64,000 nt of DNA from Monocercomonoides exilis PA203. Its lineage: Eukaryota > Protista > Preaxostyla. The translations under genes were made by a program, and so were the position numbers. Positions 1-32,505 of this stretch are shown piece after piece. The notes below the pieces were generated by a model. That model saw only the letters and a list, made by a program, of their open reading frames with translations. It ran no database searches and had not been told where the DNA came from. The number at the start of each line of letters is the position of its first letter. Position 1 is the first letter of the stretch. The stretch spans positions 744,001-808,000 of the forward strand of contig LSRY02000023.1 in NCBI GenBank assembly GCA_001643675.2, given 5' to 3'.

Positions 1-2
1 AA

Positions 3-1328
3 GAATTTTGTTTTTCTCATCCGTTGAAATCTTATGATCAAGCAAGTTCGAAGCGAGAGACAACTGTGCACAAGCAACCAACCAGACTTATTTCCATGCC
101 AAAAACAAAGCTATACGAAAAATTTAAAGAGTTGAACATAAAAATGTCTATCAGTACATTCTACAAAAAAACGAATCACTTAAAGCGTGCCAAAAGGCGT
201 TCTGATCTCTGTGATCTTTGTCAGAGATATGAATCGCTTCAAAAGAGGAAGGAGTATCTAATCACACAAGGTAAGCAACTTGATGCAAATGAAAATGTCA
301 TTATGTCATTAATTGAGAATCATAAGAAAATTGCATCCAATCAACAATCTTACTTTCGTCTTCTGAAAAATAACATATCGAAAGATGAAGCGTTGCTTTT
401 GTTTGACTTTAAAGAAAACTGGAATGTGCCCATTAAGCAAAACAGTATCAGCAAGGACTTCTACAACAAACAGGAAGTGTCTCATCTGTGCATCATTGTT
501 TATCTGAGAAATAAAGAAAATAAGATAGAAAAGCATGTTTTCAATTTTTTGTCAAACGTGATGTCACACGATTATCGTTTTGTAATCGACTGTCTCGATA
601 ATGTGTTGAGATTGAGTTTTCTTCAACAAAGAAAGACTTTTCATTTTATGTGTGACACTGGAACACACTTTCGAAATTCTTATCTTCTCCATTATCTCTT
701 ATCTGATTCTTCTCGTTTTGCACGTGGAAAGCATTGCACACTTTCATTCTTTTGCGAGAAACACGGAAAGTGTGAATGCGACGGAGAATTCGGTTATTTG
801 ACAAGGTGCATCAACGACAACATTGACGGTGAAACAGAGTTGAATAATATTGATGACTTGATTGAGTTTTTTCAGAAATATTCTCAAAATGGAATGTCTC
901 CTGAAACCAATTTGAATGAATCATCTAATTCTATTAGAAGATACTTTTTAAAGTTTGTTTTCTTTTTTTGTATTTATATTGTGTCCCTTTTTTTTGATTG
1001 CAATTTCAGATACATTCCAAGCAATATCATACTATGGAAGAAAATGGAAGTTCAGTCATTGAAAACGTATTTGTTTTACGAAAAACGAGGGAAGGAAATT
1101 TTTCGCTCTGTCTTTTCACCGAAAAACTCTGAAGGCGAATCAAGAATAGCATATAAGGAGTCGCGATCAAGAGACGAAAGGAAAAGAAAAAACAATGAGT
1201 GTTTCAAGTCAAATCCTTCAAAGAACATAATAGGAAATCAAACACAAAATATGCTTAATTATAGAATGAATAATTGTTCAAATTTTTGTGAAAATAGTTT
1301 ATCTTCAATCTCTGAACCTAATATTTGA
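3..1328 (+). CDS. Sola-superfamily-like (closest to Sola2 pattern) DDD transposase, 5'-partial, with one in-frame 57-nt intron (953-1009)
   Basis: Frame is open from the window start. CxxC..H region (DLCDLC...ENHKK) then three acidic motifs LLFDFKENW, FMCDTGTHFRN and FFCEKHGKCECDGEFG, plus SHDY. GT at 953 and TTTCAG ending 1009 remove a hydrophobic in-frame stretch and give FLK/YIP. Family assignment is from recalled motif patterns, not a search. Confidence 0.72.
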   Translation, partial: EFCFSHPLKSYDQASSKRETTVHKQPTRLISMPKTKLYEKFKELNIKMSISTFYKKTNHLKRAKRRSDLCDLCQRYESLQKRKEYLITQGKQLDANENVIMSLIENHKKIASNQQSYFRLLKNNISKDEALLLFDFKENWNVPIKQNSISKDFYNKQEVSHLCIIVYLRNKENKIEKHVFNFLSNVMSHDYRFVIDCLDNVLRLSFLQQRKTFHFMCDTGTHFRNSYLLHYLLSDSSRFARGKHCTLSFFCEKHGKCECDGEFGYLTRCINDNIDGETELNNIDDLIEFFQKYSQNGMSPETNLNESSNSIRRYFLKFVFFFCIYIVSLFFDCNFRYIPSNIILWKKMEVQSLKTYLFYEKRGKEIFRSVFSPKNSEGESRIAYKESRSRDERKRKNNECFKSNPSKNIIGNQTQNMLNYRMNNCSNFCENSLSSISEPNI

Positions 1329-1382
1329 TTTTTCGCTTTTTTGATGAATCAAACTTTTGTTTTGAAAACAAAAAATTTTTAT

Positions 1383-1575
1383 CCAACAGGAATGTTTATT
1401 GCTCAAGCTCTAATCATTATGTTTTTAACATAATTTTTAGGGTACTGCTTTTTTGCATTGATGCAAGGAAGTGGCTAGGCTGATTCCATCCTGGGATTGT
1501 GCTGTGACCGGTCCAGCACAATCCCTTGCAGGCTTTGGGGCCAGAATCAGCCTCCCAGGATAAACTTCCTGTTGG
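1383..1575 (+). ncRNA. Putative structured RNA (copy 1) 3' of the Sola-like transposase
   Basis: Stems: 1477-1486/1544-1553, 1493-1504/1514-1525, 1531-1533/1540-1542 and 1446-1457/1462-1473 (4 G-U pairs). Closing stem 1383-1399/1560-1575 extends imperfectly to about 1346/1610. Homologous covarying copy at 8948-9100. Confidence 0.7.
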
Positions 1576-1686
1576 AATCATTTTTTGTTTCAAAACAAAA
1601 GTTTGATTTATTAGTCTTTTTTTAGTGAATGTCGACATTCACAAAATTTTGAGAGTTCTCATTCATTTGTATTTTTTTTTTCGTTT

Positions 1687-3995
1687 TTGATTTCAGCGAA
1701 TATCAAACTTATTTCTTCTTATTGTCCTGTTTTTGAAAAATTCAAATCATGCACAATCAGGCTCTTGAACAAAGAACGAAAAAGAGGAAACAATAATCAA
1801 CAGCAGAATGTGAAGCCTTCACTTCCATGGACAACAATTGGGCTTGGGCTGAAGCATCTTCCAAACGATTTCTTCAGTCAGATGTTTGTTTATGAGGAAT
1901 CTGTGATTGATGAGGAAATTGGATTGGACACACTCACGCTGAGTGGGATGCATGAAGAACAGGGTCGAGTGGTTGTGAAAGAGAGGATGAGTTTCAGAAA
2001 AGAAATGATTGTGGAGGCAAGTGGCCAGGTGTATGTGAGATGGATTCAATATGTGTTTGAAGAAGTGGAATCAACATCAACTCCACTTCCAACAACGCAT
2101 TCTTCATTCATGAAGATATTTTCTGGAAAGAAATCGATCAGCGCGTGTTCGTTTGAGGGAGCGTGCTCAGCTGAGAAGGAAATGGCGGAAGTGCCATTCT
2201 GTCTGATATCTGTGGAATGAGGGAGATGCTCAATGGGGAATGTGAGCGTTTCGTGGCTTTTATTTTTGAGTGAAGCAGCCATGATTATGCAGGAAGATAC
2301 TGAAGTGAGTGGATTGACACTCAGAAATATTGATGGAAGAAAAGATTGTTTGAAGATCAATGGAGGTGGTAATGTAAAGATTTAAAAAGTGGAATCAGGA
2401 AATGTGAAGAAAAAAAGGGATGGTTCATAAATATTTGTGGAAGAGGACAAGGTTCAAATAACAGAGAAGAAAGTGAATTTTCATTTTCGATTTTGTCATC
2501 TTCATTTGAGAACATTTCATGCGTGGATGAGGGTGCAGATGTGATTGATGTTGAGGAGATGGAAGGAAATGTGGAGTTTTCGAACTGTTCATTTGGTGTG
2601 TGTTCATCAAAAAGAAAGAAAGTGAAGATGATGTATCTTTTGATGTACAAAAATATTTATATGAAGCAATGCTTGCTTGATGGGAAAACAAATGGAAAAA
2701 ATTTGAATGAGGAATTTGATTCGTGCAAATGGAATGTGCAACTTGTTGATGTGAAAGAGAGCTCAGGGGAGATAAAGGATACGAGTTTTGTGAACTGCTC
2801 CGATGGAGGTTTTTCTGTTTGTGGAGGAAATGAAAATATTGAGAAAGTTGAATCTGAAGATAACAATCCATCAATTGAAGGATATCCATCATTGAGAAGA
2901 AACATCATCTGTTCAAATTCAGGAACATTGAATGCGGTAAGTTTGAGAGGTGGAGATGGGGTGAAGGATAATTCTTCTCTTTGGATTCTGAATGATGGAT
3001 GCAGTATTGAAGGGATTGCTTCAGAGAGAGATTCATCGTTTTTCATTCCTGTTCTGGAGAGTGTGGAAGCAAAAGAAGAAGCAAACAGAATGAAGCTGAC
3101 ATTCAAAGGAATGCTTCTTGTTCCATGCAATCTGTCATTCTCAGTTGTGAAGAAGAAGGGAGAAGAGAAAGAGATTGAAAAACATGATTTTGATTCAAAT
3201 GGATTCTTATCAGAAAGAGAAGCAGAAGGAAGTGTTGCAAAGGATCTCATCAGCAATTGTGGAAATGAAATCGAGGTGAGTGTTTCAATTTTATTTGGGA
3301 ATTCAAATGCTCCTTCATCAACAAATTCATTCATTCTGAAAAACAGAAGTGAACCTGAACCAAAAGGAGATGAAAGGACTGTTGAAGGAAATAAAGAAGG
3401 AAAATCTTCATGGGCATTGGTTGTGATTTTGATATTTGCAGTGCTGTTTGTTATTGCTTTGATTGGATTTATAATATTTGTTGTTCGATGGAGAAAGCAA
3501 AAGAGAAGAACAAAAGAATTGGAGATAATTGTGGAAGACACAGTGAAAAAGGATCCGAAGCTGATTGAGATGATGACGATGGAGATGTCGCCAGAGGAGC
3601 AGTGGAGAAGGGCAGAGAGAGAGGCAGAGAAGAAGAATGAAGAGAGGATCCAGAAGAGGATGTGTGTGAAAAGTTTGGGACATTCAGAATCATCAGAACA
3701 TTTGCTGAGTGAGAGTTGTTCAACGGAATATATTTTGGGTCATGATTCAGATAAGATTCCTTATTGGGAATTAGAGAAAGATGAGGAAGAGGAAACAAGG
3801 AAGAGAACTCCATCACCATCCATTTCATCCACTTCGACGACAGATTCGGATTCAACATTTGTTCGAGGTGAGGATTTTCGTCCAACAACTTCATCCAAGT
3901 TGAATCATGAAGACACCATAGCGTGGTTGTTTTCTCGTGAAGAGCTGATTACAGATTTGAGGGATTCGTTGTTCATGCCACTTTTCATCAATTAA
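1687..3995 (+). pseudogene. Disrupted member of the expanded Cys/Gly-rich type-I membrane protein family (ectodomain, TM helix, SPEEQWRRAE cytoplasmic tail)
   Basis: Fragments 1687-2220 and 2493-3995 are separated by stops and frameshifts. TM segment WALVVILIFAVLFVIALIGFIIFVVRW. The tail is paralogous to 9937-10857 and stops early after LRDSLFM. Confidence 0.65.
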
Positions 3996-5257
3996 CCAGA
4001 TAAGAGAGTAGGTGATTGACGCTCTTCAGAAGATATTGATGACAACTGTTCTAATCTTCCTTTTGAAAAATGATCCGATACTTCTCTTTTCGAAATGTTG
4101 ACGTTCTTCAATATGTGTTGAAAAAAATAGTTGACTTTAGATTATTTTAATTTAGAAAACAATCTTATAAAACAGTGAATTTTCTGTATCACCAAATGAT
4201 TCTTTTGCGCATATTTTTAAAAAATAATAATAATAAAGATAAATACTTTTTTGTATCTGCCTTCAATGAAAGATAATACCGACAAACAATCATTTTCTCT
4301 CTTTAAAATTAAATTAATAAAAAAGCAAAACTAATACATCATTCTAAACAAACTCAAACATTTTCATCCTTTTTGAAACTTCATTTTCATCAAAAACAAA
4401 TCATGTGATTAATATTTCAATAGCTTTAACGTTTGCATTATATCTCTCAATTTCAGCTTTTTCTTTCAGCAGATTTCATAAAATTTTACAAAAATATTTT
4501 TGATAATCAAATGAATGAAAAGGAAAAGATATTGAGAAGAATAAAACTGTAATTTATCAGTAATCTCAATAAAACAATATTTCTGTAAATTGATGCTGTA
4601 AAATATGACAAAATATAAAACCGTTTTGGTATCAGGTGATAATAATAAAAAAAAAAGTGAATTGATGATATGGAAAATGAGGCAATACATATAATTTCTT
4701 GAAATCAGTCATTTTTTGAAATATGAAATGAGCTTCCGAATAGTTGAAATAAACATTTGAATGATGGAAAAAAGCAAACTTTTATACAACGTAAAATCTA
4801 TTTATACGTTTTTGATGAAATTTAAAATCCTATTTGTGAAAAAAAAACCAATCAAAATTAATAATTTTAGATTTTTTGAAACAAAAAGAAATAAAGAATA
4901 GAAAGTTCACACGTGCAAAATTGGATATTTATACACGTATTGCATGAGAAATTTCAGCACATAATTCAAGAGATATCAAAAAAATATAAATTCTGTTTCC
5001 ACCATTTCCCAAACTTTATTATGGTTAAAATGATCAATGCCAGAAAGAAATTTGGACGAACTTTTAATGAGTGATTTCAAAGAAAAGAAATAAATGTTTA
5101 TATTACAAATAGATAATTTTTGTATGTTTGAGACAGTTTTATTGAAAATGTTTTCAAAAAAAAAATACCCCCGAAAAAATTTATGATTTCAAAAATAATC
5201 ACCCAAATAACAACTCATACCATTCGCTCATAAATATTGTTCAAATTTTGTAAATTA

Positions 5258-5458
5258 ATTTCCACTTCTTTTTGTGTTCCTTCGCTTTCCTTTTTGTTCA
5301 ACCCAACTATCAGGATTCAAGGCACACTAACAAATATCAATTCTGTTTGAAAATAGATATTCAAAGAAATATAACATTCACAAAGTTCAATCAGCAGTTA
5401 TTCCTTCCTTGCTTCGTTATTCTTTTTCACCTCATTTATCATCTGTTCAAATCTTTTA
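5258..5458 (-). pseudogene. Decayed remnant of a helical-repeat multigene family
   Basis: Minus-strand translation gives KRFEQINE...LLIELCECYI and ELIFVSVP*ILIVGLNKKESEGTQKEVE with internal stops. This resembles a recalled oxymonad repeat-protein family. Confidence 0.35.
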
Positions 5459-6152
5459 TAAAACAAATAAGAAAAGATCTAAAACATCTGAACAATTATT
5501 CAAAAATATCCTGTGCATTCCCTGAAACATTTTCAGTTGGGTCTGTGCATTCCTCAAAATCAAACAGAAACAATAGGTTCATTGATTTTCCGAATGTTGG
5601 AAAAAAAATCCACGTTAAAGAATTTCAAGCACCTTTTGGGACATCTGAATAAGGACAATTCAAAACTAATCTTCTGAATCATACCTTGTCTTTCGTTTCC
5701 ATAAGAATAAATGAATAAGGATGACCAGCTTTCTATTTTGTTTGCGAAGAACTTTGATTGATGATCTGCGACAGCCAGAGCATGTTTGAGATGCTTGTGT
5801 ACACTGTTAAGTTGCACGCATGCAAGTTAAAGCACTGCTGAAGAGTAAGGTTTTTTCTTATTAACATTGGAACAAGCAGATATTTTCATTGATTTTCTGC
5901 AAAAAAAAAGATGATATTGAAAACTGCACGAAACTTCAATTTGGTAAAATATTACAAAACTTACGACGCTACATCGGCTGCGATATTTTGAATGAAAATA
6001 TAATATTGCGATATGCAAAAAAAGTGAGCTCATGTGCAATTTAGAAATGGCCCAAAAAGAAAAAGCAGGAGAAGAAGAAGGTTGAAAAGTGAAATCAATG
6101 TTTGAAAAAACTTATAAAGGTAATAAAACCATTATCCAATTAATAGATGTAG

Positions 6153-8078
6153 GTGGGAAAAAAAGATTATTCTCTTCGTCCACGTTCCACAAGAAGCCGT
6201 CATTCTACAAAAATCTACGACTTATTGACAAATCTTGCTGAAGACGACCCCAAAGGGTGTTTGTTGAATTTCCTTTGCCACTCCAAAAAAGGAAAACCCT
6301 TTCGTGAAGATATTTATACGCTCTTTAACAGTTTGTATTCAATAACATTGCAACTTATTTCATTTTGTTTCATTGGCTTATTTAATCCCACTATATTTTG
6401 TAATTCCTTTGAATGAAAAGAAAAAACTTTAAACGTATTAAAGAATTTATCGCTGTTATACGATTCGTCAAAAGCCAACACAAAAGTCTGCATTTTGCAC
6501 TCAGTTTCTTCTGATTTTTCCTTCCAGGAGCTGCTAAACTCCGGTTGGAAAATTACAAGAGCTGAATACTATAACTCGCGCGAAAGACCAAAACATAGAA
6601 ATTCAGAAAAACGGTTTGAAATGTCAGAAAAAAGCTTAAAAAATGTTTGATTTTCTGATGTGAATTGTGAAATATATTCGATTTTATCTTTTTTTCTTTC
6701 TTTCTTTAAAAGCAAATGATTTCACATTGGCAGAAAGTTGGCTTTTAGCCCATAGTTCTTGTGGTTGTCAAAACGATAGAATTTCAAAAAAAAAAAGTGT
6801 GATCCTTTCTTCTTCAATTAAATTTCTTATTGATATAAATTTATTCTGTATTTTATATTGCAGAAAAAAATAAGGAAGATAAAAGCAATGAAGAAAAAAA
6901 TAAAGAAGATAAAAACAATGAAGAAAAAAATATAGATGATAAAAAAAAATATGATGTTAATAATAAAGAAAAAAATAGAAAATGTCAAAAATTTAACAAA
7001 GAAAATATATTCTCCTTCTCAGAATAAAGTATAATAGAGAAAACAGAAAAAAGAATTATATTCTGAGATGTAAAAAGAAGTTGAAAAAAAAATGTCTCAT
7101 TCTTCTTTCTGCAAAAAGACAAAAAACTTCAAAAAAGCAAAAAAACGTACTGATCTTTGTGAGTTGTGTGTGAGAGGAGATTTTTTAACAAATAAAGAAA
7201 AAGAATTGAAGAAAAATATGAAAGAGTTGAAAGAGGAAGAAAAAGAAGAAATAAGATTGATAAATGAACATAAGAAAATGGCACAAAGCCAGAGAGACTT
7301 TTTGAATTTTTAAAGAAATAATTTGAAAATGAACGAATGTGTCATATTAATGGATTTTAAAGAAAATTGGTCTCTCCCAATTTCTTTTCATGAAACTGGA
7401 AGAAGTTTTTTGATAAGAAACAAATTTCTCATTTATGTTTTGTTGTGTATTGTCTTGATAATTATGGAAAAATGAAAAAATGTTGTTTTAATTTTTTTTC
7501 TGAAATTTTATCTCATGATTACCGTTTTGTTTTGGAATGTTTAAATAAATTGTTACGATTTGATATTTTTATGAAGGTTAATAATTTTTGTTTTTTTGCG
7601 ATAACGGTCCACATTTCCGTAATTCGCATATTTTATTTTCTTTGTTTTCTCCAAATTCATTTTTGTTTAAAAACAAACACTGTTCATTGTCGTTTTTTGC
7701 CGAACATCACGGAAAAAACGACTGTGACAGTGAGTTTGGATTGTTAACGAACATTTTAAATCATTATTTAAGAAACAAAGGAATTAACACTATTTATGAT
7801 TTAATAGATTTTTATTGTTGTTATTTTCATACTTATTTATTTAATACAGATTCCGACAATTCAACTATTTTTTTGTCTGAAAGAAATATTTCTTCTTTTG
7901 AATCTACTTCTTCTTCATCAGCATCGGCTTCTTCTTCTTCTTCGCAATTTACAAAATCAATTGAAACAAAATGCAAAACGGAGCATTTCTTTTTAAAGTA
8001 TTTAACTAAATTTTATATTTATTTATTTATTTATTTATTTATTTTTTTATTTTTTTATTTTTTTATTTATTTTTAAAT

Positions 8079-8145
<67 letters not shown>

Positions 8146-8150
8146 TTTTT

Positions 8151-8233
<83 letters not shown>

Positions 8234-8849
8234 TTAAAATTTTCAGACACACAGAAATGGAAAATACTATTTGGGGAGAGCTAACTCTCAATGGAATGAA
8301 AAATTATTTGCATTTCTCAAATAATGATGGAAAACTTTGTTCGACTGCTCTTAGCACATTTGATGAAAAAGAGATGGATGAAATGATATGTAAAGAAAAA
8401 ATGGTGGAAGATAAAAGAATTTGAAAGATATTTGAAAGAAAAGAAAATGATTAGAATGAAATTAATGTTGTGGGAAAAAAATCGGAAAAAATGTGAAAAA
8501 TGTGATTGAAAACAGATAAAGATTAATTGAAAAGAAAAACAATGAAAAGATGAATAATATAAATGATAATTTTTTATCTAATTCTATGTTTATTGACAGA
8601 TTCGACTGCGTGAAGAACAGCTCAGGTATGTCTCAGGTCTGATCTTTTTCAGAATCATCAATTAATTCAAATTCTTTTTCATATAATTATAATTCAGATT
8701 TGAATTCTTTTAATTCTTTATTTTGTAGTCAACCGCTTGAAGACTGTTTCGCAGATTCTGTTTCCGAAAAACGGTATGAAGGTGCTTGTTGTTCTGATTC
8801 AATTGAAATAGATGTAAGTGATAATGATGTGATTATTACTGAATTTTAA
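6153..8849 (+). pseudogene. Second, divergent Sola-like transposase, disrupted by frameshifts and stops; intron 7998-8246
   Basis: KKAKKRTDLCELC, MDFKENW, SHDYRFV, FFCDNGPHFRN and FFAEHHGKNDCDSEFG are collinear with the 3-1328 protein but split over several frames. The post-intron exon (HTEMENTIWGEL...NYLHF) aligns with YIPSNIILWKKM...TYLFY. The 3' limit is approximate. Confidence 0.72.
8016..8235. repeat. (ATTT)n microsatellite inside the transposase intron
   Basis: Directly visible tandem ATTT array between GT at 7998 and TTTCAG ending 8246. Confidence 0.95.
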
Positions 8850-8947
8850 TTCTTCCAATAACATAAATGGATTGTGAAATTATGCAAATAAACTCCAACT
8901 GAATCAAACTGATTTTCAAAAATATTTTATATTCGAGAAAAAATAGA

Positions 8948-9100
8948 AACTCACTTTTGCTTTTTCTATGATTCCTTAATTTTTTTCTAAAAATCAAGGT
9001 TGAGAGCTAGACTAATTCAATCCTGTTATTTTCAATTTTTTTAAAAAGAAAATAACTTACAGAGTTTGGGCTCAGAATTAGTTTCCCAGGAAAGTGAGTT
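8948..9100 (+). ncRNA. Putative structured RNA (copy 2) 3' of the second Sola-like transposase
   Basis: Stems 9009-9018/9075-9084, 9025-9033/9048-9056 and 9062-9064/9071-9073, with closing stem 8948-8957/9091-9100. Junction sequences and spacing match copy 1. Confidence 0.7.
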
Positions 9101-9216
9101 ATTATTTTTTTCTGATAAAAAACTTAAAAAATGAAAATAATTGGATTCGGAATTAAACCTTTGCGACATATAAAATCTGTGATTTTTGTGTCGGTCGACA
9201 ATAGTATCTTATGTCG

Positions 9217-9287
<71 letters not shown>

Positions 9288-9936
9288 AATGAATGCTTGC
9301 GTTGCTCAATTCGATAAAATAAAAACGAAAAAAATAATAACAAAAAAATTTTTCATTATGAATTGTGATTGTTTTTTCAAAGATCTTGTTATCCATAATT
9401 ATACAATAAATGTTTCATTGGTATGGGTGTGATCAAAATTGTTAATTGTTTATCAGTCGAATCATGATATATTAAATGCTGTAAACTTCGAATTTCATAT
9501 ATAGTTGTAACATTTATTTGAGGCGGATTGCATGTTTTTTTATTCTCGCAAGTTTCATTTAGGTCTCTGAAAAGATATTCTTTTTTTCAACAATTATTTA
9601 ACTTTCGTGTTTTTTTAATGAATAATCATTTCTTCTTGTTTGATAATTTTTTTCATTCGCAAATATCACAAGCGGTGGCTGAATGAGCTTAACTTAATGC
9701 AAATCTGAAAAAAATAGTTTTTGAAAGTTTGTTCAATTTCTTAGTGTTTTTGAAATTTCATTGTATTGTTTTGGTACATAATTATGTTGATTTTATGAAA
9801 TAAAGGCAATTTAAAGTTGATGATTGTACAATAATTCATATTTTCAAACAAAGATAAGGATTTCATGTGTTTGAAAGTTGCATAAGTTATTAATGTTTTA
9901 ACAGCAAATTTTCTAATTTATTACAACTGTGTGATT

Positions 9937-10857
9937 AGAAAAAATATCTCAGAAGAAACGAAGAGCTGGAAGAAATAGAAAATGACACAGTAAAGAAAGA
10001 TCCGAAAGCGTTTGAGATGGTGACAATGGACATGTCTCCTGAGGAGCAGTGGAGGAGAGCAGTGGAGGAGAGGAGAGAAGAAGAATGAGGAGAGGATGAA
10101 GAAGAGAATATATGATACAAATATTCAGCACTCTGAGTCATCTGAGCATTTATTGAGTGAGAGTGGATCAACAGAATGCATTCTTGGACAAGACTCTGAT
10201 AAAAATGGAGAATGGGATTCGGAGAAGGTTGAAGATGACAAAGATACAAGGAATAGTTCATCACCATCAGTTTCATCAACAGATACAGAAACCACATTTG
10301 TTCGTGGGGAGGATCTATTCCCAACCACCTCATCGATGTCGAATCTGGTGGATGCAATGGCCTGTTCATCGCCTCACGAGAAATTGATTGTCGACTTGAG
10401 GGATTCATTGTTCATGCTGCTTCATGGAAGGAATGAGAAGAAGGAGATGGCAATTGGCTCCTTGAAGGAGAGAGAGCAAACAGCTGCCCAGATCCTGTTC
10501 TGGGTGGCTAATCTTGCTCTTCACTCCTTTGACGAAATGGAAAATGAGCTTTCCTCTTTGGCCAATCTCAGTCCTCACATTGTGCTGTTCTCAGAGCACA
10601 TGGTGATCTGCATTGCCCTCCACTCCGACTGCTCCTCAGACTCTGACACTTCCTCCATCTCTTCAGCCTCCACCATTGTCACATCTTCCTCTGATTGCTC
10701 GAGAGCGAACAGGAACGGCAGAGGCTCACCTCCACCATCATCGGAGTTTGAAGACGATGACGACAACAGGAAGGATTGCATGCGATGGAAGGCACCAGAA
10801 CTGTTGATGAACAAGAAGATGAGAGCGACAAATGAATATATCAGATTATCTATATAA
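9937..10857 (+). pseudogene. Cytoplasmic-tail fragment of the membrane protein family, with degenerate kinase-like RWKAPEL motif, inside the hAT element
   Basis: Paralogous to 3510-3980 (KKDPK...MSPEEQWRRA, HSESSEHLLSES, TFVRGED, DLRDSLFML). No TM or ectodomain, a frameshift near 10070, and truncation after MRWKAPELLMNKK. Confidence 0.75.
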
Positions 10858-11556
10858 ATGCTGAAACAATATAGCTTAACGGTTCAAAAGCCGTTTCAAA
10901 ATAAGAAGCATTAAATACCTAATGGAAGAAATCAAGCAAAAAGAATCCAAGACTGGGAGCGGTAGGAAAAGCACACTGCTCGATACTGTCAGGTTGTGAC
11001 AAGAACACAACCCCAATACCAGATCCTCGCTCGTACAGGTAAAGCGTGTGCTCGTCCAGTAGTTAATGCTTGGCGCAGCAATGCTCACTTTATTCAATAC
11101 GAATTTCTGCTGATCAGAAAGAAGATGCAACTCGAGAAAAGACTGCAGTGGAGGCTAATATGGCATAGCAAAGAGTCCAGATGAACAGAGCATTTTATAC
11201 TTCTCACAAAAGGGATAAGGCTTCGCTATCTTGTACTGATAACATTTCAACTTACAATCCATTATCGTTTGAAGACCTATTCAACCAGCAACACGGACAA
11301 TTATGAAGTTGAACTTATAAAATGTTCAAAAAGATATTCATCACATTTTTCTTTATATGTTATTTTTTCCTTGCTCTTCCTGAAGTTATTCACTTTGCCT
11401 ATATTGTTTTTATTCCTCTCACGTGAACGACAAAAGCAAAAAGAAACAACAAAAATTTGTTATCTGTAACTATCAGTGAATGTGTTTAAAATTAGAAAAA
11501 AAAATAATAACCTAGAAAAAATGAAGTTGAAAAACAACATTATGAATATCAACGTT

Positions 11557-14396
11557 TCACAAAATTAACAACGCGTTCAATGTGTCCAGATTTAAAGAGT
11601 ATCTTCTTTCTCCGATGATTCTTTTTAGGCGAGAAAAAAGACGTTCACAAGAGGATTCGCTAACAGGAGCTACGATTAGAGAGTAACAAATATTTGCATA
11701 AATATTTGGTTCTGTTCCGTATTTTCCAATTTCGAAGTAATAAACAAAGGGATTGTCCTGCACAATCGAAGGATGATAATCAATCAGAAAATATGTGAGC
11801 AAGGCTATGCACTCGGACAGAAGTTGATCTGTTTGATTAAACAAGACTTTCTTCACATATGTTTCAAATCCGCTTTTTATTCTTGCAAACCAATCCATAT
11901 GAATTGCCTGCAATATTTGTGACAAGCATTTTTTTCTTTCTTCTGTTATCTGAATATTTGAATCAACAATTTTTCCACTTGAACCTATTTCTTCCACTTC
12001 CTCCTGCTCTATTTCTTCCGAACAGCATGATCCAATTTCTGTGTTTTCAATATCCATCCTGTTTGTATCATTTGTTTCGCTGAGATTTGAAGATGCATCA
12101 ACCAATCGAGTGGGATAAAACGAAGGTGAAATGGATGCTAAACTGGAGGATAGCCTTGTTTCATCAAACTCATCATTTTCTGACTCTTGTTCAGCTTCAA
12201 CAAGTCCGAAAATCTCTTCAAAATCCTCATTATAAATTTCTTCGCCATCTTTTTCTTCACATGATGAATTCAAGGAACAATTCTCTTCAAGACATTTTAT
12301 GATGGTTGTAAGAATATTATCGTTTGATGTTTTTGGTCCAAGTGGTGAAATAATTTGTGTCGATAATAGAGGATTGGTGAATAAAGATGTAACTGTGTGA
12401 GGTATTGAATTTATTTGTTGTGTTTCCTTTTTGTATTTATTAATTGATAATCGTAATTCGTTAACGCTAAATGGTGACACATTTTGAATTTGATCCCTTT
12501 TAAACATTTGTGAAGATGTTAAAACCGTTGTTTCACTTTGAAAGAAAGTTGGCTGACATTGATGACTTGTTGTTTTGGAAGAAAAATTCGAGAATGATTC
12601 CAATGAATGATTCGTCGCAAGATAAATATTTTCAGATGAACATATAGATTTTTGTGAGTGTGGCAAATACATTAATGGATTGAAGTGCATCGTTTTTGCT
12701 GTGTTATGTTCAGATTGCGACGATGATGATGAAGAGCTTACAATTTTATCGGAGGATGTTTCATGGTGGGAAATGGTATTTTTTGATGAGTATAGATATT
12801 TCAAAAATTCCATTTTCTGTGAGAAAGATTTTATGAACATGCCTTGTCTGTATAAAGTCGAACCTTCTGGCGTTAATGAAAATGCAAGAGCAAGAAAATT
12901 TCCTCTTGCTCCTGCAAAAAAATAATTGTGTAACAAAACCATGCATTGTATAATGTTCTGATTCCACTTTTCATCTTGAAAAATTTCAAGTTCAGATAGC
13001 CATGTGTACTGAGCAAACGCATGAAAAATACATTGAAATACTGACCCAAGCTTTGTTTTATCATCCTCAAAAATGAGGTGCATCGTTTGAAGTGGGAACA
13101 GCAGAACTTCGCATTTAATCACATCTGTTATTGTTGATCTATCTAATATATTTAAATCGAGAATAAAATCAGAGTTTTTTCTAATAAAAAAACAAATATT
13201 ATATAAACAAAGCCAACGTGTTGAGATAAAAACTGGGCACTTGGGTTTCGACATATCCTTTGTTGCACGTTTTCTGTAATTCTTTGAAAATTGGATAATT
13301 ATTTCTTTCAAATCTTTCAGATATTTGTTTGAGTCAAATAAGTGAATAACAATCAGGTTTATCAAATGGTTGTTGCAGTAAATGAAGAACGGTATTATGT
13401 CGTAATCAACTGAATCTGCACTGAATGTTTTCAAAGATTCATGAATGTTTTCAATCGCAATTTTCTGAGATTTTAAGCCATCAGTGCAGAAACATCGAAC
13501 TACTGATTTTATTTCTTTCATCTCTTTCATAATATTCATTGCAAGTCGCAGTATTGTTCTGAAGTTGCGCAATGTTTTCTAAGTCCCCAAAAAACAGGAT
13601 GTGCATTTGATTGTAATGGAACAACAGAAATAACGATGTATTTTTTTCCTGCTACAAGTCCTCCATCAAACATCACTGAAACTGAAGTATTTGAAAGAAT
13701 TTCATTTCTTTCTTCAATCTTTTTCCTTGTTTCTTTTTCGATCATGGATGTAAGTTTTCTTGCAGAAAGAATAGGAAATATTGATGTGTGAGGCAGAGTT
13801 GGATTGGCCTGAGATGTTTTTATAACTTCAGTAATAAACGCATTGAACTCATTAGAATATGCCGATAAAAATGCAATGTTGCAATGACTAACAAGATGCA
13901 AAAACATCTCAATTAATTTGTTGAACTGAAAATAAGATGTCGATTGGATATTTCGTGGATTGCATTCTTTTGGCAAGGCTTTTTTTTCTAAATATGGTAC
14001 TATCGTTGTGGAATGCACAAGTGAACAATGATGATCATCAATTCGGTTTGTTCCTTTCCTTGCAGAAAACGTGCAGTTTATTCTACATTTGCAATTTGGG
14101 CATAAATAGGAATAATGACCGTCTTTTTTCAAAGAACCATCTGCAAGAACAATGACGTATGCTATCCACAGTTTTCCTTTGGTTTCTTCAAAATGAACTT
14201 TTCCAATCTCTTGTCCAGAATTGTTTGGGTGCTTATAATCTGAAAGCAAATAAAAAATATTGTCAAAATCAAGATGAGAAAAATCTAACAGTGAAATCAA
14301 ACACTGGCAAAAAATGGTTGTTCTCCCTGGAACCAACGATACAAGAGTACATCCATTTTTATTCAACTCATCGATTTTCGCTTTGAATGCATCCAT
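11557..14396 (-). pseudogene. hAT transposase split by one frameshift near 13545
   Basis: BED-like Cys/His region (YLCPNC...HHC), VMFDGG (D1), FCTDG (D2), CNNH (CxxH), STRW, and C-terminal APVSESSCERLFS (E) dimerisation domain. ORFs 13536-14396 and 11557-13572 overlap out of frame. Confidence 0.88.
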
Positions 14397-22950: not shown

Positions 22951-24067
22951 TTACATATAAAACGGAAGTGAGCAATGAGGACACACAATCTTCTTCGAAG
23001 CTCTAAACCAGTTCTGCAAACACGCTCCATGGAAGCATTTCTCACACTCTCTGCATCTCGCCCTTGGCAAAGCATGAGTGACGGTGTCAACAACAGAGAA
23101 GCAGATTGGACAAGGCTCACAACCAGCAAAGAATCCCTGGACATTCGAGACAAGCACACACAGTGCATATGACAAGGAAGAGGCAGTGATTGTAGAGGAA
23201 GAAGCAGAAGAGGAGAAGAGAAGAGAAGAAGATAACATCTCCCACTTCCTTGCCAGCGCCACTGGGATGCCATCTCTTCGGATGAAGCTTGGGAGAGGAG
23301 GGCGAAGAGGGTGGGTGGGAGAGCAGCGGATGTTGACTTGCACTCGAATGGCGCTGTCTGCCTCTGACTCCACAATCAGCGTGAGTTCTCTCGTGCGTGG
23401 GCGGATGGTCAGTGTTGTGTTCTCGAAGGAGAGGACAGGGTTGTCTTTCTTTGAGGAGGAGGAAGAAGAAGAGGAGGAGGAGGATTTGGTGGGGCGAGAG
23501 AAAGTGGAAGACAAGAAAGAAGGAGGAACAAATGAGGAAGGAGAAGAAGAGTTGAAGATGGCAAGTGTTTCTGTGAAGTCTCGTTGCACAATTGAAGGTG
23601 TCACCAAAGTTTCGATTATCTTCTCAACCAGCTGAAGAGGAATTGTGGGTGAGAGACAAGGAACAGACTGCTTGGAATATGAAGAAGGAGAAGAAGAAGG
23701 AGAGGCAGAAGAAGAGGGAGAAGGTGAAGGAGAAGGAGAAGAATGGGCTTCTCTTTGATTTGCTCTGGATTCAGTTTTCTTTCCTTGTTTGCTGTTTTTA
23801 CCTTCTCCTTTCTTCTCTCCTTTGTTTTGCGTTGAATCATTCTCATTTTTCTTTCCTTTTCCTTTTCCTTTTCCTTTTCCTTTTCCACTTCTTTTTGGTT
23901 CAATCATTTCAGTAAGCAATCTAATTTCTTCATCAATTTCATCTTCGTTCTCTTTATCTTCCTTTTCTTCTTCATCTTCTTGTTCTTCTATTTCTTCCTC
24001 TTCTCCTCTTCTTCCATATTTTCTATTGTGCTTCTTTCCTCTCCATTTCCCTGCCTTCTTCTCCCTT

Positions 24068-24099
<32 letters not shown>

Positions 24100-24313
24100 T
24101 CTTTCTTCCTCTTCGTCAATCTCCTTCAACTCATTCTCTTTCTCTTTCTCCTTCAACATCAACAGAACTTCATCTTCTTCATCATCTTCGCTCCATCTTC
24201 TCTCAAGAAAAGAACGAAATCCTTTTGTATTCAATCTCAAGCCAAGAATAAGCAGCACTAATATCAGCTCTAATGGAGGAGGGTTGCCAGATGAAGGCAA
24301 TAGAGGTGAAGAA

Positions 24314-24348
<35 letters not shown>

Positions 24349-27300
24349 AGAAAGAGGAGAAAACATAGCAAATGATAACAGTTTGCGTAGAGAAAGCTTC
24401 CAACCAGGAGAAATGAGGGTGTATCCATATTCATTGAATTTAGGCACAATAGATGAAGATGCTGCTAATGAAGAAAGGAAAGAAGAAGAGGAGGAAGAAG
24501 AAGAAGAGGAAGATGAAGAAGAAGAAGAAGAAGAAGAAATATATTTTGTTGGATAGCTTTTTGCCACAGAAGACACTTGAGAAGCGAGGCGTCGAACGTT
24601 CAGAGGAGAAAAGAGGATGGAAAGAAGATCGAAGAAAAGAGGGTATTTTCTGATGAAGAAGGGAGAGAAGAAGGGAGAAGAGGAAGAGGAAGAGGAAGAA
24701 AGAGCAGAAATCAACTGAGAAAGAGAAGAAGAACCAGAATCCAACAGAGCATTTTGTATCAAGTGCGAAATAGAGTGAGGGATATGCGCATCAGAATGGG
24801 AGAGCAAAAGCAGCCAGAGGAGAAGAAGAGAATAAGAAGGAAGAGAAGAAGAAGAGAGGAATGCAGAGAGAGAAGGATGGAGGCTAAGTCGAAGAGACTC
24901 GATTTCTTCGGAGGGAAGAGAGGAAGGATAAGGAGAGTGGGAGAGAGAGAACTGGAGAGAAAGAGAAGAAGAAGAGGAAGAAGAAGAAGTTGATGATTCG
25001 CTCTTCTTTTGATTGGATTGGATGGTTGGGGCGGAAGATAATTGGAAAAGACGCAAAAAGAATTCGTTTCCTTCTTTTTCTTTGGAATTTTCGTTGTTTG
25101 AAGAAGAAGGAGAAGAAGAGGAAGAGGAAGAAAGAGAAGAAGAAGAAGTATTTTCTTCATTTAATATCTTCCTTTCTTCCTCGCTCATCACACACAAATG
25201 CCAGAGGATGTAGCAGCCGATGATGCGAACATGAGGAAGAGTGGAAGAGAGGAGAGAGAGAGAAGACTCAAATATGACATCTACTTCTGTTGAGGGAGAA
25301 GAAAGAGAAGAGGAAGAAGAGGAAGAAGAGGAAGAAGGAGAAGAGAAAGAGGAAGAAGAAGAAGAAGAAGAAGAACATATTGAAAGAGAAGAAGGAGGCA
25401 TAGGAAGAATAAGGGAAGAAAGCGAAGAAACAACAGATTGAATGGCTGCTCTTGTGTTGAACGCACAAAAAGTGGAAGAAGAAAAGAGAGAGAGAAGAAG
25501 AGAAAGAGAAGAGAGGAGTTTTGTTCTGAGCGAAAGGGCTACAGAAAGATATTGGTATTTCAGAGGAAGTTGTTCAATATCAATGAATGAAGAATGGTTG
25601 TTATTGGAGGAAGAAGAAGAAGAAGAAGAAGAAAGAGAAGAAGAAGAAGAAGAAGTTATTGTTGATGAATCTTCTGTTTTGTTGTTGCTTCGGAGGGAGG
25701 AAGGAAGAAGGTAATCAAATGCATTGTATTTCATTATTCTCTTGAAGAAAGAGGAAGAAGAGGAAGAGGAAGAGGAAGAAGAAGATGTTGATGTTGATGT
25801 TGATTTTTCAGCATTTTCTTCTGTATTTTGAAGATAATTTGCTATTTTCAATGAATCTTTTGTTTGTTTTTGACTTGCTTTTCCGCTTCCTTCGCTTAAA
25901 CCTTCTTCTCCTCCTTCTTCTTCTTCTTTCTCCTCTTCTTTCTCCTCTTCTTCTTCTTCTTCCTTCTTTGCATTTTCAGCTTCTATGCTTTCCTTCAATC
26001 TCCTTTGAGAAGAAGAGAAGAAAGAGTCGAGAAGAAGAAGAGAACAACGAATGGACAAAGAAAGAAGAAGAGAAAGAGAATTCAGAATGTTCTGTTGAAC
26101 TGAGATCTCATTGATGTTATTGGTGTTATTAACATTATTGTTATGTTTTGTTGATATAACTTTATCTTTTTCTTTTTCTTTTTCTTTTGTATTTGAAGAT
26201 GAAGATGAAGAAGAAGAAGATAATGAAGAAGAAGAAGAAGAAGAAGAGCATAAAACATTCTCTTTGTTATTATTATTATTATTGCAATCTTCTTCTTCAC
26301 AAGGCAAGCAATTTCTGATTGCATCTTCTCTGAAATATGCCAACGGAGTCAAAATAAAAGGTAGCTTTTTCCCTTCTTTTTGCTGTTTCAAAAGAGGGAA
26401 AATGAAAAATGATGAATTTTTGAGGGCAAAAATAGAAGAACATTCAACAATACGCCAAATTGACAGAGAAACAACGAAATTCGGGTTTAACAGCATGTTT
26501 TGAGTGAAAAGTGACTTTTCTTTGGTTTCTTCTTCTTTTCCTTCTTTTTCCTTTCGTTTTTCTTCCATTTCCTTTGAAATGTCAGCAAAGGAGTGATATT
26601 TTGACAGTATTTTGTGAGCAAATGAATGGAATAGCTTGACAAAATGAAGAGAAGACAGAAGAAAGCGAAGAAGAGAGACGAAGAAGGAGATTTGAGAAGA
26701 AAATGAAGGAGAAGAAGAAGAAGAAAGAGAAGAAGAAGAAAGAGGAAGAGGAGAGGAAGAAGAAGAAAGAGAAAGAGAAGAAGAAGAAGAAATATAATCA
26801 GCAAATGAAGCAATTCTTGCTTGCAGTAAATCGTGTTGAGAAGACAAGAATATTCCAATGGAATTACAAACAGTATTAAGTTGAGGATTAAGATGTTTGA
26901 TTGAATATCTTGAACGATTTAAAGAAAAGAAAGAAGAGGAGGAAGAAGAGAAAGAGGATGAAGAAGAAGAAGAAGAAGAAGAAGAAGAAGAAAATGAAAT
27001 TAATTGCTTTGTTAGCCAATTTAGTGTGTTTGTTAAGTCAGAAAACGAAGAATCGTTTGAGATTTCAATGATTTCATTCAATTTTGAAGCAAATATTGTG
27101 GAAACATCATCTTTTTGGATAGATTTTTGAATAATTTGTGATTTTTATTCTTCTTTCTTCTCTTCTTCTTTTTCTCTTTTCCCTCCTTCTTTCTTCTCTT
27201 CTTCTTCTTTCTTCTCTTCTCCTTCTCTTTCTCTTTCTCTTTCTTTCTCTTCTCTTTCTTCTTCTCTTTCCTTCTCCATTCCCACAGGATATTCAGCAAA

Positions 27301-27423
27301 TGAAGCATTAGCAAGTTTCTGCATAAGATCTTCTTGTGACAGAGAACGAGAAGAATTCACACCCAAAAAGATGGAAGAAGCGTATGTCAATCGGAGAGAA
27401 GAGAAGAAGGAGAAGGAAGATGG

Positions 27424-27454
<31 letters not shown>

Positions 27455-28369
27455 AATAATGAAGAAGTGAAAGAAGAAGAAAGAGAAAGAGAAGAAGAAT
27501 TTGAAGAAGATGATGAAGATGAAGATGAAGGAGAAGAAGTAACTTGATTTGTTTTCTTTTCGTTTTCTTCATGTTCATTTTGAGAAGATATAAGAGAAGG
27601 CAAGACCAAAGCGAAGAAGAGGAGAAGAGAAGAAGAAGAAAGAAGAAATTCTCGTGAACGAATAGCTGGATGAAGAGGATGGCAAACAAAGAAGGAAGAG
27701 GAAGAAGAAGAAGAAAGAGAAGAAGAAGAAGAAGAAGAAGCTAATAACAATTCGTGAGGACTTATCATTTGACAAGTAGAGGCTAAGGAGAAGAGAAGAG
27801 AAGGAGATGATGAAGAAGATGATGATGATGATGATGAATTGTTTCTTTCTCTTCTCTTTCTTCTTCCTTCTCGTTCTCCTTCCTCCTTCTCCTCCTCCTC
27901 CTCTTCTTCTTCTTCTTCTTCTTCATTATTCTCCTCTTCTTTCTTTCCATTTATTTCAAAGTTTTGTCCCATCATAATCGTTTGAGTGGTATGCAGATCA
28001 GAAATAACAAGAGAAAGGCTTAAGAGAAGAAGAAGAGGAGGACGAAGAAGAAGAGAAAGAGGATGGAGAGAGGAAGAGGAGAAGAAGAAGGATAAAGAAT
28101 CAAGAAGAGACAGTTTGGAGGAAGAGGAAGAGGAAGGAGAGGAAGAGGAAGAGGAAGAGGAAGAGGAAGAGGAAGAGGAAGAGGAAGAGGAAGAGGAAGA
28201 GGAAGAGGAAGAGGAAGAGGAAGAAAGAGAATGAGAAGAAGAAATGGAATTAATTTCTTCTTCTCTTTCTTCTTCTTCTTCTTCTTCTTGTTTCAAAGAA
28301 GAAACAAAAGAATAAATAGAGAGGAATATTTTGGAAAGAACAAAGGAATAAGAGAGAGAGAGGAAGAAA

Positions 28370-28404
<35 letters not shown>

Positions 28405-31400
28405 AAGAGAAGAAGAAGAAGAATTAATCAAACAAGAAGCAGATGAAATTGAAGGAAGAAGAAAGTCTCTTTGAAGAATGTTAAATGGAGAGATGTCATC
28501 AATGTTAATGTTCTGAAGAGAATGTTTGGAGTCTTTTTTGGAAGAAGAAGAGGAAGGAGAGGGAGAAGGAGAAAGAGAAGGAGAAAGAGAAGGAGAAAGA
28601 GAAGGAGAAAGAGAAGGAGAAAGAGAAGGAGAAAGAGAAGAAGAAATTGAAGAGGAAGAAGAAGAAGAAGAAGAAATTAATGATTTAGAAGAAGAATTAC
28701 CGCTATTATTATTATTATTCAGTCCAAAAGGATTGTAAAGCAAAAGAATAACAGAAAGGAAAGATGATCCATTGACATACGTGTTTTTGAAGAAAGAGAA
28801 CAAGAAAGAGATTAAAGGGAGGGTTATGGGAAGAAGTCGGGGTGTGAGGGATAAGAGAGAAGAAGGAGAGAAAGGAGAAGAAGAAAGAGAAGAGGAGGAG
28901 GAGGAGGAAGAAGAAGAATTTAATGAAGAAGAAGAAGAGGAAGAAGAAGAATATTCATTTGATTCGTTTCCATTGTGAAGTTGAGTGAGGAATTCGAAGA
29001 GATGATGAAGAGAGGCAGGGGAAGAGGCAGAACTTGGGGTGGAATAAGAAGAAGAAGAAGAGGAGGAGGAGGAGGAAGAGGAGGAGGAAGAAGAATTTGA
29101 TGAAGAATGAGAAGAAGAAGAAGAAGTATAACCAGAATTATTATTCAAAGAAGAAATAAAATGTTTTTCTGCTTTTTTTGAGGGTGTATTTGATATGCTT
29201 CTTGCATATGCAGCAAAATCGTTACCTAATTTGGAACATACGGAATCATACCAATGGACAGCCAGGGTGCCAAAACAGGCAGCTACGAACACCCTCCCAA
29301 TTAGGAAGTGGAGAAGAGAAAGAGAAGAAGAAGAGGAAGAGGAAGGAGAAGAAGAAGAAAGAAGATGATAATGATTAGAAGGCAAAGATATTTGGAGAAG
29401 ATGAATGATGGCATATTGAGAACGTTCAACTGATTTTAAGAAGGAAGAAGAGGAAGAAGAAGAAGAAGAATGAGAAGAAGAAGAAGAGGAATAAAGAGAA
29501 GGAGCAAAAAGAGAGGCAAAAAGATAGAGGAAAAGAGTTTCTTGAGGAGAAAGATAAGAAAATGGCTTTGTTTGTTTGTTCGAAGAAGAAGAAAGAGAAG
29601 AAGAAGAAGAAGAAGAAGAAGAATTTACAGAGCAAATGTTGGAGAGAAGGAGAGGAAGAGAAGAAGAAAGAACTTTTATGATGTTTGGAAGGCTAAGAGT
29701 TGACAGAGGAGAAGAAGAAGAAAGAGAAGAAGAAGAAGAAGAAGAATTTGATGTTAAAAGAGCAATTTTAACGATATCGACAACTTTGAGAAGAAGAGAA
29801 GAGAAAGAAGGAGACGTTAATAGAGAAGATAAATGTTTTTCTTTGACAATCGATTTATTAGAAGAAGAAGATGATGATGATGGTGATGATGGTGATGATG
29901 TTTCAGATGAAATACATGAAGAATCTTTCTCTTTCTCTTTCTCTTTCTCTTTCTCTTCTTCTCCTTTTTCCTTTTCTTTCTCCTTCTCTCCCTCTTCTTC
30001 TTTCTCCTCCTCTTCTTCCTCTTCTTCTTCCCTTTCCTCTTCCCCATCATCATATTCATCCACATCAATAACTGTCTCTCTCAACAAAAATGAGAGCAAA
30101 TGAGAAGAAGAAGAAATAGCAGCTGTTTTCATCATAGAAACAGCTGGAATGTGACGAGGATGAAGAGAAGAAGAGAGAGAAGAAGAAGAAGAAAGAGAAA
30201 GAGAAGAGGAAGAAGAGGAAGAAGAATTATGATGATGAGGAGGAGGAAGAAGGAGAGGATTCGCTAAGTAAGAAGCAGAAGAAGAGAGAGAAAGAGAAAC
30301 TGAACATAATGAATCTTGTTCTGGAAGAGAAGGAGAAGAAGAGGAAGAGGAAGAAGAAGAAGAAGAAGAAGAAGTTATGATATTGTTCTTATCAATATCC
30401 ATTTTCTCTTTCTCTTTCTCCTTCTCCTCCTTCTCCTTCTCTTTCTTCTTCATCTTTCTCATCTTCTCCTTTTTGCTTTCTTCATCACTCAAAAACTCTT
30501 TTCTGATCGTTTCGTTGTATTTCCTCAAAAACAAAGCAAACGTTTTGATTGAAAATGGATTTTGTTTGTTTTCGTTGCTTTTTGTTTGTCGATTTCTTAT
30601 TCTTCCTCCTCTTCCTTCGATTTCTTCTTCTTCTTCTTCTTCTTCTTCTTCTGTTTCTTCTTCGCTTTCTTCACTTTCTTCCTCCTCTTCTTCTTCAAAT
30701 TCTTCCTCTTCCTCTTCGTTTTCTTCATTGTCCTCTTCTTCTTCTGATTCATTCTCTAATTTATCAGAATTTTCCGTTTCTTCTTCATTTTCTTTGCCTT
30801 TTTCATTTTCTTCATCGCTTTCTTTCTCTTTCCCTTCTTCATCATTTTCCTCCTCCTCTTCTTCTTCTTCTTTCTCTTCCTCTTCACTTTCTTTCTCCTT
30901 TTCTTCTTCCTCATCCTCTTCCTCTTCTTCCTTCTCCACTTTCTTCGGATCCAGCACAAAATCAAACGATTTCAGCGCAATTAGATCGATCAAAGGAGAA
31001 GAAATGAACGAAGGCAGAGGAGAAGAAGAGAGGGAGATGGAGATGGAGACAGAAGAAGGAGAGAAAGCGGAAGAAGAGAAAGGGTGTTTGATGTTGTGGA
31101 GGTTGTCTATGAGGGTGGTGGAGAGGTGGGAGAGAGAGAAAGAAGGGGGAGGAAGAGGAGAAGAAGAAAAAGGAGAAGAAGGAGAAAGAGAAGAAGGAGA
31201 AGGAGAAGAGGAAGAAGAAAGAGAGGAAGAAGAAGAATTAGAAGAAGAAGATAACATCATTTGTGCCATTTTTGATCTCGAAGCAGAGGTGGAGAGAGAA
31301 GAAGAAGCGATGTTTCTTTCTTTGATGAAAGAGAGAGAGACAAGAAGAGGATGAAGAGAAGGTAGAAGACGACGAAATGAGCGATGTTTGTGGGATTCAG

Positions 31401-32113
31401 CTAAATTCAGCCCTTTTGTGAGGAAATCATTCCAGAGCTGTTGGCAGAGGAAGAGGGAAGATTTTTTGATGGAGAGAGAGGGAGAAGGAGAAGAAGAAGA
31501 AGATAATAATGAAGAATCAATAGAAGTAGAAGATGATGATGATGATGATGAAGCAGAAGAAGAAGAAGAAGAAGAAGAATTTACATATTCATTTCCATTT
31601 CCATCTCCATTTATTTCTTTCTCTCTTGAATGCAGCATCATAATCCTCTTCACACACATCCCCACAATAGCAGCAGCAACAGCCAAAGGAGAGAGAGAAG
31701 AAGAAGACGAAGAGAAGAGAAAAGTTTTTGTTATGTTTGTCTCTTTGATGGAGGAAGAAAGGAAAGGAAACAAAAACCCATTGCAGAGAAGAAGAATTTC
31801 GTCTGTTTCTGTTTGGATTCGATGCGATTGGAGCTGCAACAGTATTTTGTTGAGTTCCATTTGAGAAGAGGTTAATTCATGATGATGATGATGATGAAAT
31901 TCTTCTTCTTTGGATTTTTCTTCTTTTTCTTTCTCTTTTTCTTTCTCTTCTTTCTCTTCTTTCTCTTTCCTTTTCTTCTCTTTTTCTTCTTCCTCTTTCT
32001 CTTCCATCTTCTCTAATTGCTTTCCCCATATAGCTGAATCAATTCGTGGAATGGAGAGAAAAGGAAGAGAAAGAAGGAAATATGAAAAGGAATATAAAGT
32101 TGGGGATGAAAAT

Positions 32114-32145
<32 letters not shown>

Positions 32146-32470: not shown

Positions 32471-32505
<35 letters not shown>

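Follow-up and report, generated by a model that had tools for sequence, protein, structure and literature searches.

A conserved RNA-like element downstream of DDD transposase genes in Monocercomonoides exilis, probably a new functional RNA

INTRODUCTION

A DDD transposase gene of the protist Monocercomonoides exilis PA203 is followed, in the sense direction, by an elaborately folded module which comparison of its copies strongly supports as a real and previously undescribed RNA-like family and which is probably a new functional RNA. The module was studied in a stretch of 64,000 nucleotides (assembly GCA_001643675.2, contig LSRY02000023.1, positions 744,001 to 808,000 of the forward strand), hereafter called the window. 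Its fold persists throughout the traceable transposase lineage, from subfamilies with coding sequences about 66% identical to a second organism whose proteins are 36-42% identical, and its core is conserved more tightly than the gene itself. Cut-and-paste DNA transposons are not known to need a complex folded RNA, and we know of almost no exploration of oxymonad RNA biology. The module is a candidate for a ribozyme of a new class, for a new fold that blocks nucleases and for an RNA cofactor. Its transcription, its action in cis and any catalysis are inferred, and we give about even chances to the reading that it constitutes a new structured-RNA family located in the sense-strand 3' UTR of the transposase gene and acting in cis on the transcript.

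ARCHITECTURE OF THE ELEMENT

The element measures approximately 150-270 nt and consists of six helices: a closing stem (P0), two hairpins (PA and PB) and a three-way junction built from P1, P2 and P3. Folding of window positions 1340-1615 with RNAfold yields -126.9 kcal/mol against -62.5 +/- 4.5 for shuffled sequences (z = -14.3), and the minimum free energy (MFE) structure contains the closing stem and the three-way junction together with hairpins at 1407-1443 and 1445-1474. The long closing stem and the two 5' hairpins proposed in a preliminary description of this DNA were thereby recovered, and every helix written out in it is present at its position. MFE folds of 15 divergent copies display the same architecture. 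The features of the first copy (window 1343-1614) are as follows.

1343-1399, + strand: 5' strand of P0 in the MFE fold; the inner 6 bp occupy 1394-1399 and the outer part is imperfect
1400-1408, + strand: conserved junction UGCUCAAGC, the same in all GC-type subfamilies although the flanking hairpins vary
1407-1443, + strand: hairpin PA, found in GC-rich types only, then the conserved GUAC at 1442-1445
1445-1474, + strand: hairpin PB, whose 3' strand GRGG continues into GCU and P1
1477-1553, + strand: core of the three-way junction, from covariation counts; RNAalifold independently gives P1 and P2
1477-1486/1544-1553, + strand: P1, a 10-bp helix
1487-1492, + strand: junction strand J1/2
1493-1504/1514-1525, + strand: helix P2
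1526-1530, + strand: junction strand J2/3
1531-1533/1540-1542, + strand: P3, a 3-bp helix with the 6-nt loop L3 at 1534-1539
1543, + strand: J3/1, a single A
1554-1559, + strand: near-invariant junction strand CCCAGG, linking P1 to the 3' strand of P0
1560-1614, + strand: 3' strand of P0, from the MFE fold and P0 pairing counts

The order in GC-type copies is P0, UGCUCAAGC, PA, GUAC, PB, GCU and P1 onward. A hairpin occupies the PA position in each of the seven GC-type subfamilies, with unrelated sequences (MFE folds), and PB appears in the MFE folds of all types, including the environmental copy L082 introduced below. The AT-rich types read UGCUUAUCC in place of UGCUCAAGC at the junction; together with the environmental copies, they follow the order UGCUUAUC(C), a single hairpin, YUGAGR and then GCUAG. 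The fixed single strands of the module are UCCUG, CUUGMAG, UUGGG and CCCAGG, the last being kept in 27 of 28 distinct copies (the exception, L073, has CCCACG).

P0, which usually reaches 20-55 bp and is imperfect, adjoins UGCU on its 5' side and CCCAGG on its 3' side in every family. The CCCAGG strand, which had been taken for a 3' tail, is therefore not a free end: these 6 nt form the junction that links P1 with P0 on its 3' side. The full element exceeds the one first described.

COVARIATION, FOLDING STRAND AND CONSERVATION

The covariation set comprised 28 distinct sequences, L082 among them; about 60 AT-type genomic copies lay outside it. In this set, 96.4% of the helix cells form standard pairs, as opposed to 33-50% when the partners are slid; both sides change in 16 pairs, and none of 500 shuffles reaches the observed values. 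The first 6 bp of P0, compared across subfamilies, are paired in 97.5% of cases (33-53% after sliding), and single positions show as many as four pair types. Changes in P1 run from G-C to A-U and from U-A to A-U, with five further swaps in L082, P2 sequences are unrelated between families, and P3 occurs as GGC/GCC, GAG/CUC and GGA/UCC. RNAalifold, which was applied to nine diverse cores and was not fitted to the manual model, recovered P1 and P2 with 14 compensated pairs. These counts support covariation, for which the preliminary description had proposed a check.

Read on the + strand, the nested helices contain 18 G·U pairs while A·C pairs are absent, in agreement with the G-U pairs reported earlier. 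This imbalance identifies the + strand as the one that folds and rules out a symmetric cruciform.

Comparison of subfamilies gives an identity of about 66% for the coding DNA and of about 92% (91-94%) for the core, while the flanks cannot be aligned. The borders of the conserved block are sharp: it starts at GGCUAG and ends at CCCAGG.

COPIES IN THE GENOME AND LINK TO THE TRANSPOSASE GENE

BLAST located at least 40 near-identical cores in the M. exilis genome (82.3 Mb, 101 contigs), and a search of that genome with covariance models, which the preliminary description had suggested, raised the number to 115 copies with model R1 and 124 with model R2. Around 55 genomic copies are of GC-rich types and around 60 of AT-rich types resembling the second copy of the window; the loci examined carry a single module each, on one strand.

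The module is tied to the transposase gene in the sense direction, as had been claimed. Homology to the DDD transposase on the + strand stops 144-228 nt before the core at 30 of 30 GC-type loci, both transposases of the window carry the module 3', and the catalytic domain of AT types is found about 1.0-1.25 kb before it. At six AT-type loci (L070, L074, L075 and L077-L079) the catalytic domain was not found within the 1.5 kb examined; one of them, L070, falls in the transposase-linked w2 family, and the other five come from families whose link to the transposase is putative. The single named protein relative comes from M. exilis and is encoded exactly by locus L008. The distance from the module to the end of the gene is stable, and that from the module to the end of the transposon is variable (128 nt to 3.6 kb).

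The second copy of the window belongs to the AT-rich type.

8948-9100, + strand: second copy, with P0 at 8948-8957/9091-9100, one 5' hairpin and the core at 9003-9090

It scores 78.2 bits with R1 and 94.5 bits with R2 (9003-9097), its fold is also given by MFE, and its P1, P2 and P3 differ from those of the first copy through compensating changes; the statement that the same fold follows a second, divergent transposase is upheld. Inside the region of the second transposase gene, 8010-8236 is a long (TTTA)n microsatellite; past the second module, at a distance of 130 nt, comes a run of about 65 T (9222-9286).

Loci L077 and L078 have in common only some 140 nt upstream and some 185 nt downstream of the module, the DNA farther upstream being unrelated. 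Their sequences suggest elements truncated at the 5' end or deleted internally, with the module and the right end retained.

THE HOST TRANSPOSON AND ITS PROTEIN

Two features of the window delimit the host element of the first copy.

1-1328, + strand: 3' part of the transposase gene, with the DDD catalytic domain; a UCH/USP protease domain lies farther upstream
5206-5210, + strand: right border of the copy-1 repeat unit, where the copies on contigs C66, C80 and C8 lose similarity

The open frame starts at position 7987 of locus L031, some 2 kb before the window, and extends to window position 1328. Its upstream piece (L031:7987-9999, equivalent to window -2013 to 0) contains the UCH/USP domain (PF00443, E 4e-12). 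This domain is fused upstream within the transposase frame, and the N-terminus of the environmental relative P0002 is too short to hold one. Alignments of relatives show no variation in a CxxC motif or in residues D135, D218 and D260. Searched as two pieces, upstream and window, the frame matched no transposase family of Pfam; the nearest named Atlas clusters in a language-model feature search were DUF7869 and PF07592 (DDE_Tnp_ISAZ013), and a literature search gave no superfamily assignment. The label 'Sola-like' given earlier to this enzyme is consequently unconfirmed.

The copy-1 repeat unit exceeds 14 kb (window -8909 to 5208, with the left end beyond), and copies on C66, C80 and C8 share it at 75-92%; its upstream ORFs had no Pfam match. 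The module lies about 3.6 kb from the end of the element in GC-rich families, and AT-type elements finish 128-191 nt after it, at ...CCC followed by AT repeats. The AT-type loci L070 and L074-L078 have in common the right-end motif GGGTGGAACA...CCC, after which come 2 to 8 AT repeats. To judge from the sequence, these repeats could be either a target duplication of 4 bp (ATAT) within AT-rich DNA or a tail of simple repeats.

Several other features of the window and its relatives were recorded. A palindrome centered on GTCGAC (ATGTCGACAT-like) is present at window 1625-1642 and about 9190-9200 and at loci L008, L017 and L066; its distance past the module is 70-100 nt in several families that are otherwise unalignable. 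A 671-aa ORF at 11557-13572 on the - strand, with a hAT C-terminal dimerization domain (PF05699, E 1e-4), belongs to a different transposon. Two long intron-free ORFs follow on the same strand at 22951-27081 (1376 aa) and 27145-35181 (2678 aa); the former ends in a C-terminal RING finger, and neither has another clear domain.

THE MODULE OUTSIDE M. EXILIS

A full HMMER search with the DDD domain retrieved 892 relatives at E<=1e-3. Among those from outside M. exilis, P0002 is the nearest, with an identity of 42% over the matched stretches and of 36% in the alignment; it is encoded by a contig of 2.5 kb and 24% GC (L082, JGI sample 3300010163) on which 115 nt separate the stop codon from the module (60.7 bits, E 1e-12), and a P0 is present there too. 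Its paralogue P0151, from the same metagenome sample (L103) and 54% identical to P0002, is likewise followed by the module, at a distance of 91 nt from the stop (45.5 bits). P1 has been rewritten in both contigs, almost wholly in L082, and yet it remains paired, and the junction strands are retained. The module thus stands behind relatives of the transposase in another organism, a link that the preliminary description had proposed to seek in other protists, here on two contigs of one metagenome with proteins 36-42% identical.

Twenty readable contigs encoding relatives of 38% identity or less, mostly 43-55% GC and often with short flanks, did not contain the module; they consisted of 14 loci from a protein-based metagenome scan and six more, with proteins 21-38% identical. 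A sequence-pattern scan of metagenomes for the core, using a pattern that required YTTGG in L3, gave 0 matches. That requirement is the reason why the scan missed L082, which was found through its protein.

POSSIBLE PSEUDOKNOTS

The preliminary description presented the fold as doubly pseudoknotted. CCC could indeed pair with GGG of L3, and AGG(A) with (U)CCU of J1/2; 92-96% of the cells are pairable and the columns barely vary. The GGG:CCC pairing, from the P3 loop to the strand after P1, is pairable in 96% of cases with invariant columns, and among the columns of the tail pairings only the outermost pair varies (A-U, G-C and G·U), within GC types. RNAalifold offers an alternative in which CCU of J1/2 pairs with GGG of L3 and CCC pairs with the GGG situated 5' of P1. 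Because the partners are invariant and the same strands have rival pairings, the pseudoknots are not confirmed. The rival pairings may possibly reflect a conformational switch of the modeled fold. A pairing of GGG at the base of P2 with CCC was also considered and rejected, the base of P2 in copy L066 being AAA/UUU.

SEARCHES FOR KNOWN RNAS AND TRANSCRIPTS

Rfam 15 at the gathering threshold produced no match in the whole window. At E<=10, positions 1300-1660 gave weak chance matches only, none of them on the core and none to the HDV family, and four divergent copies, L082 included, had no match at E<=1. With no family assigned to the window at the gathering threshold or to five copies at permissive thresholds, the absence of a known Rfam family, presumed earlier, is sustained. 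ARAGORN detected no tRNA-like gene in window 1-12000.

In the 5200 nt compared, contigs assembled from four metatranscriptome runs fall only on 1850-4000 and none on 1-1740. Since such contigs attest presence and not absence, this gap over the element is not evidence against its transcription. The contigs on 1850-4000 (ORF 2493-3995) are 90-99% identical, in many variants and with a high summed depth; the region is partly GAA-rich, so that some of these RNA contigs may come from other organisms. A diverged homologue of ORF 2493-3995 is found downstream of the second copy, at window 9951-10417.

POSSIBLE FUNCTIONS

In the reading that we prefer, the folded RNA would act in cis on the transposase transcript, determining its 3' end or how stable it is. 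Among specific mechanisms, site-specific cleavage of the element by itself is tentatively favored. Self-cleavage or another form of processing is favored because of the many fixed junction nucleotides and the possible HDV-like pairings: in such a nested topology P1 would run into a 3-bp helix between loop and strand, P3 would have 3 bp, and J1/2 would pair with the strand after P1. By this analogy, a new class of self-cleaving ribozyme is a tentative possibility.

A non-catalytic element in the mRNA would act in cis as well, by blocking an exonuclease in the manner of an xrRNA, by protecting an unusual 3' end or by recruiting an export or translation factor. Such a role would suit the position of the module in a 3' UTR, and the pairing available between GGG of the P3 loop and CCC after P1 reproduces the loop-to-3'-strand topology of class 1 xrRNAs. 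There is also a precedent in ENEs, which are stabilizing elements in the 3' UTRs of transposon transcripts. However, neither xrRNA nor ENE models of Rfam match the module, it has none of the U-rich internal loops typical of ENEs, and P0 and the 5' hairpins are conserved too although an xrRNA needs neither. We regard the non-catalytic reading as rather doubtful.

The RNA might instead be a cofactor of the transposase, as a scaffold or guide comparable to omega RNA with TnpB/Fanzor or bridge RNA with IS110. It is encoded directly after the transposase gene, is conserved more than the protein-coding DNA and, in AT-rich families, lies only 128-191 nt from the right terminus. In GC-rich families, however, some 3.6 kb separate it from the end, and its variable parts are closed helices and not open loops. 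The complementarity to the transposon end expected of a guide also failed to appear: across seven families, right ends only, neither complementarity nor identity of the RNA to the terminal 45 nt exceeded that of shuffled controls. Moreover, the enzyme is an RNase H-like DDD transposase, and we know of no RNA partner for such enzymes. A cofactor role therefore seems unlikely. Its strongest form, an RNA that would be the obligatory partner of a DDD transposase in an RNA-scaffolded or RNA-guided cut-and-paste transposon of a eukaryote, appears distinctly unlikely, and a new self-cleaving ribozyme class is the more likely of the two. The obligatory partnership, if true, would bring DDD transposases into an association with RNA for which TnpB/Fanzor and IS110-type enzymes are the only known cases.

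A recognition site at the DNA level, in which the + strand would fold as single-stranded DNA while the element replicates or transposes, or the duplex would extrude a cruciform, would also predict compensated hairpins in the single-stranded form, and G·T pairs are tolerated in DNA. The strand bias excludes the symmetric cruciform, the position of the module is fixed relative to the stop codon and not to the transposon end, and cut-and-paste DDD enzymes act on duplex ends; this makes a DNA-level site very unlikely.

The sharp borders and the private closing stem might suit a hitch-hiking small-RNA gene with its own promoter, for instance a Pol III transcript, but this is highly improbable given that no consistent T-run follows P0 across families (by eye), that the module has no tRNA-like or Rfam match and that it lies in sense near a stop codon. 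A string in P1 resembling a B box was considered for such a Pol III gene and discarded, being conserved neither in AT types nor in L082.

COMPARISON WITH KNOWN SYSTEMS

HDV-like ribozymes (HDV, CPEB3 and the drz families) are common at the 5' ends of non-LTR retrotransposons. The module resembles them in being transposon-borne, and a nested double pseudoknot could form in it: P1 may lead, by its 3' strand, into a short, P1.1-like G-C helix with the P3 loop, P3 has 3 bp and a 6-nt loop, and J1/2 can pair in a P2-like manner with the strand after P1. Within this nested arrangement P1 and P3 covary, whereas the P1.1-like and P2-like partners are invariant and have rival pairings. The differences are numerous. 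The module is devoid of P4 and of J4/2, the strand where the catalytic cytosine of HDV resides, and AGG directly follows CCC. In place of the G·U wobble that closes P1 of HDV-like ribozymes, 27 of 28 sequences of the module have A-U as their first pair; at the second pair, G-C is found in 16 and G·U in 12 of the 28. P1 has 10 bp, P2 and P3 are separated by a long hairpin and a conserved 5-nt strand, and P0, PA and PB surround the whole in the 3' UTR of a DNA transposon; no model of the HDV clan matched at E<=10. As three defining features of HDV are absent, the element is not a member of that family.

Class 1 xrRNAs of flaviviruses share with the module a three-way junction, a location in the 3' UTR and, if the modeled pairing forms, a pseudoknot from the P3 loop to the strand 3' of P1. 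They differ in that no pairing of a free 5' end into the junction was seen in the module, whose 5' side leads to PB, PA and P0; the module possesses a closing stem and additional 5' hairpins, and has no match to them in sequence or model.

Omega RNAs of TnpB/Fanzor and the bridge RNA of IS110 are, like the module, structured non-coding RNAs adjoining the 3' end of a nuclease or recombinase gene, and in AT-rich families the module is also near the right end. In contrast, its enzyme is a DDD RNase H-like protein, no guide-like match to the terminus was found, and its distance to the end is not fixed.

The triple-helix ENE elements of plant and fungal transposon transcripts have a paired U-rich internal loop that the module lacks, and a junction architecture far less complex. 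What the two would have in common is an RNA structure that works in cis from the 3' UTR, in transcripts that include those of DNA transposons.
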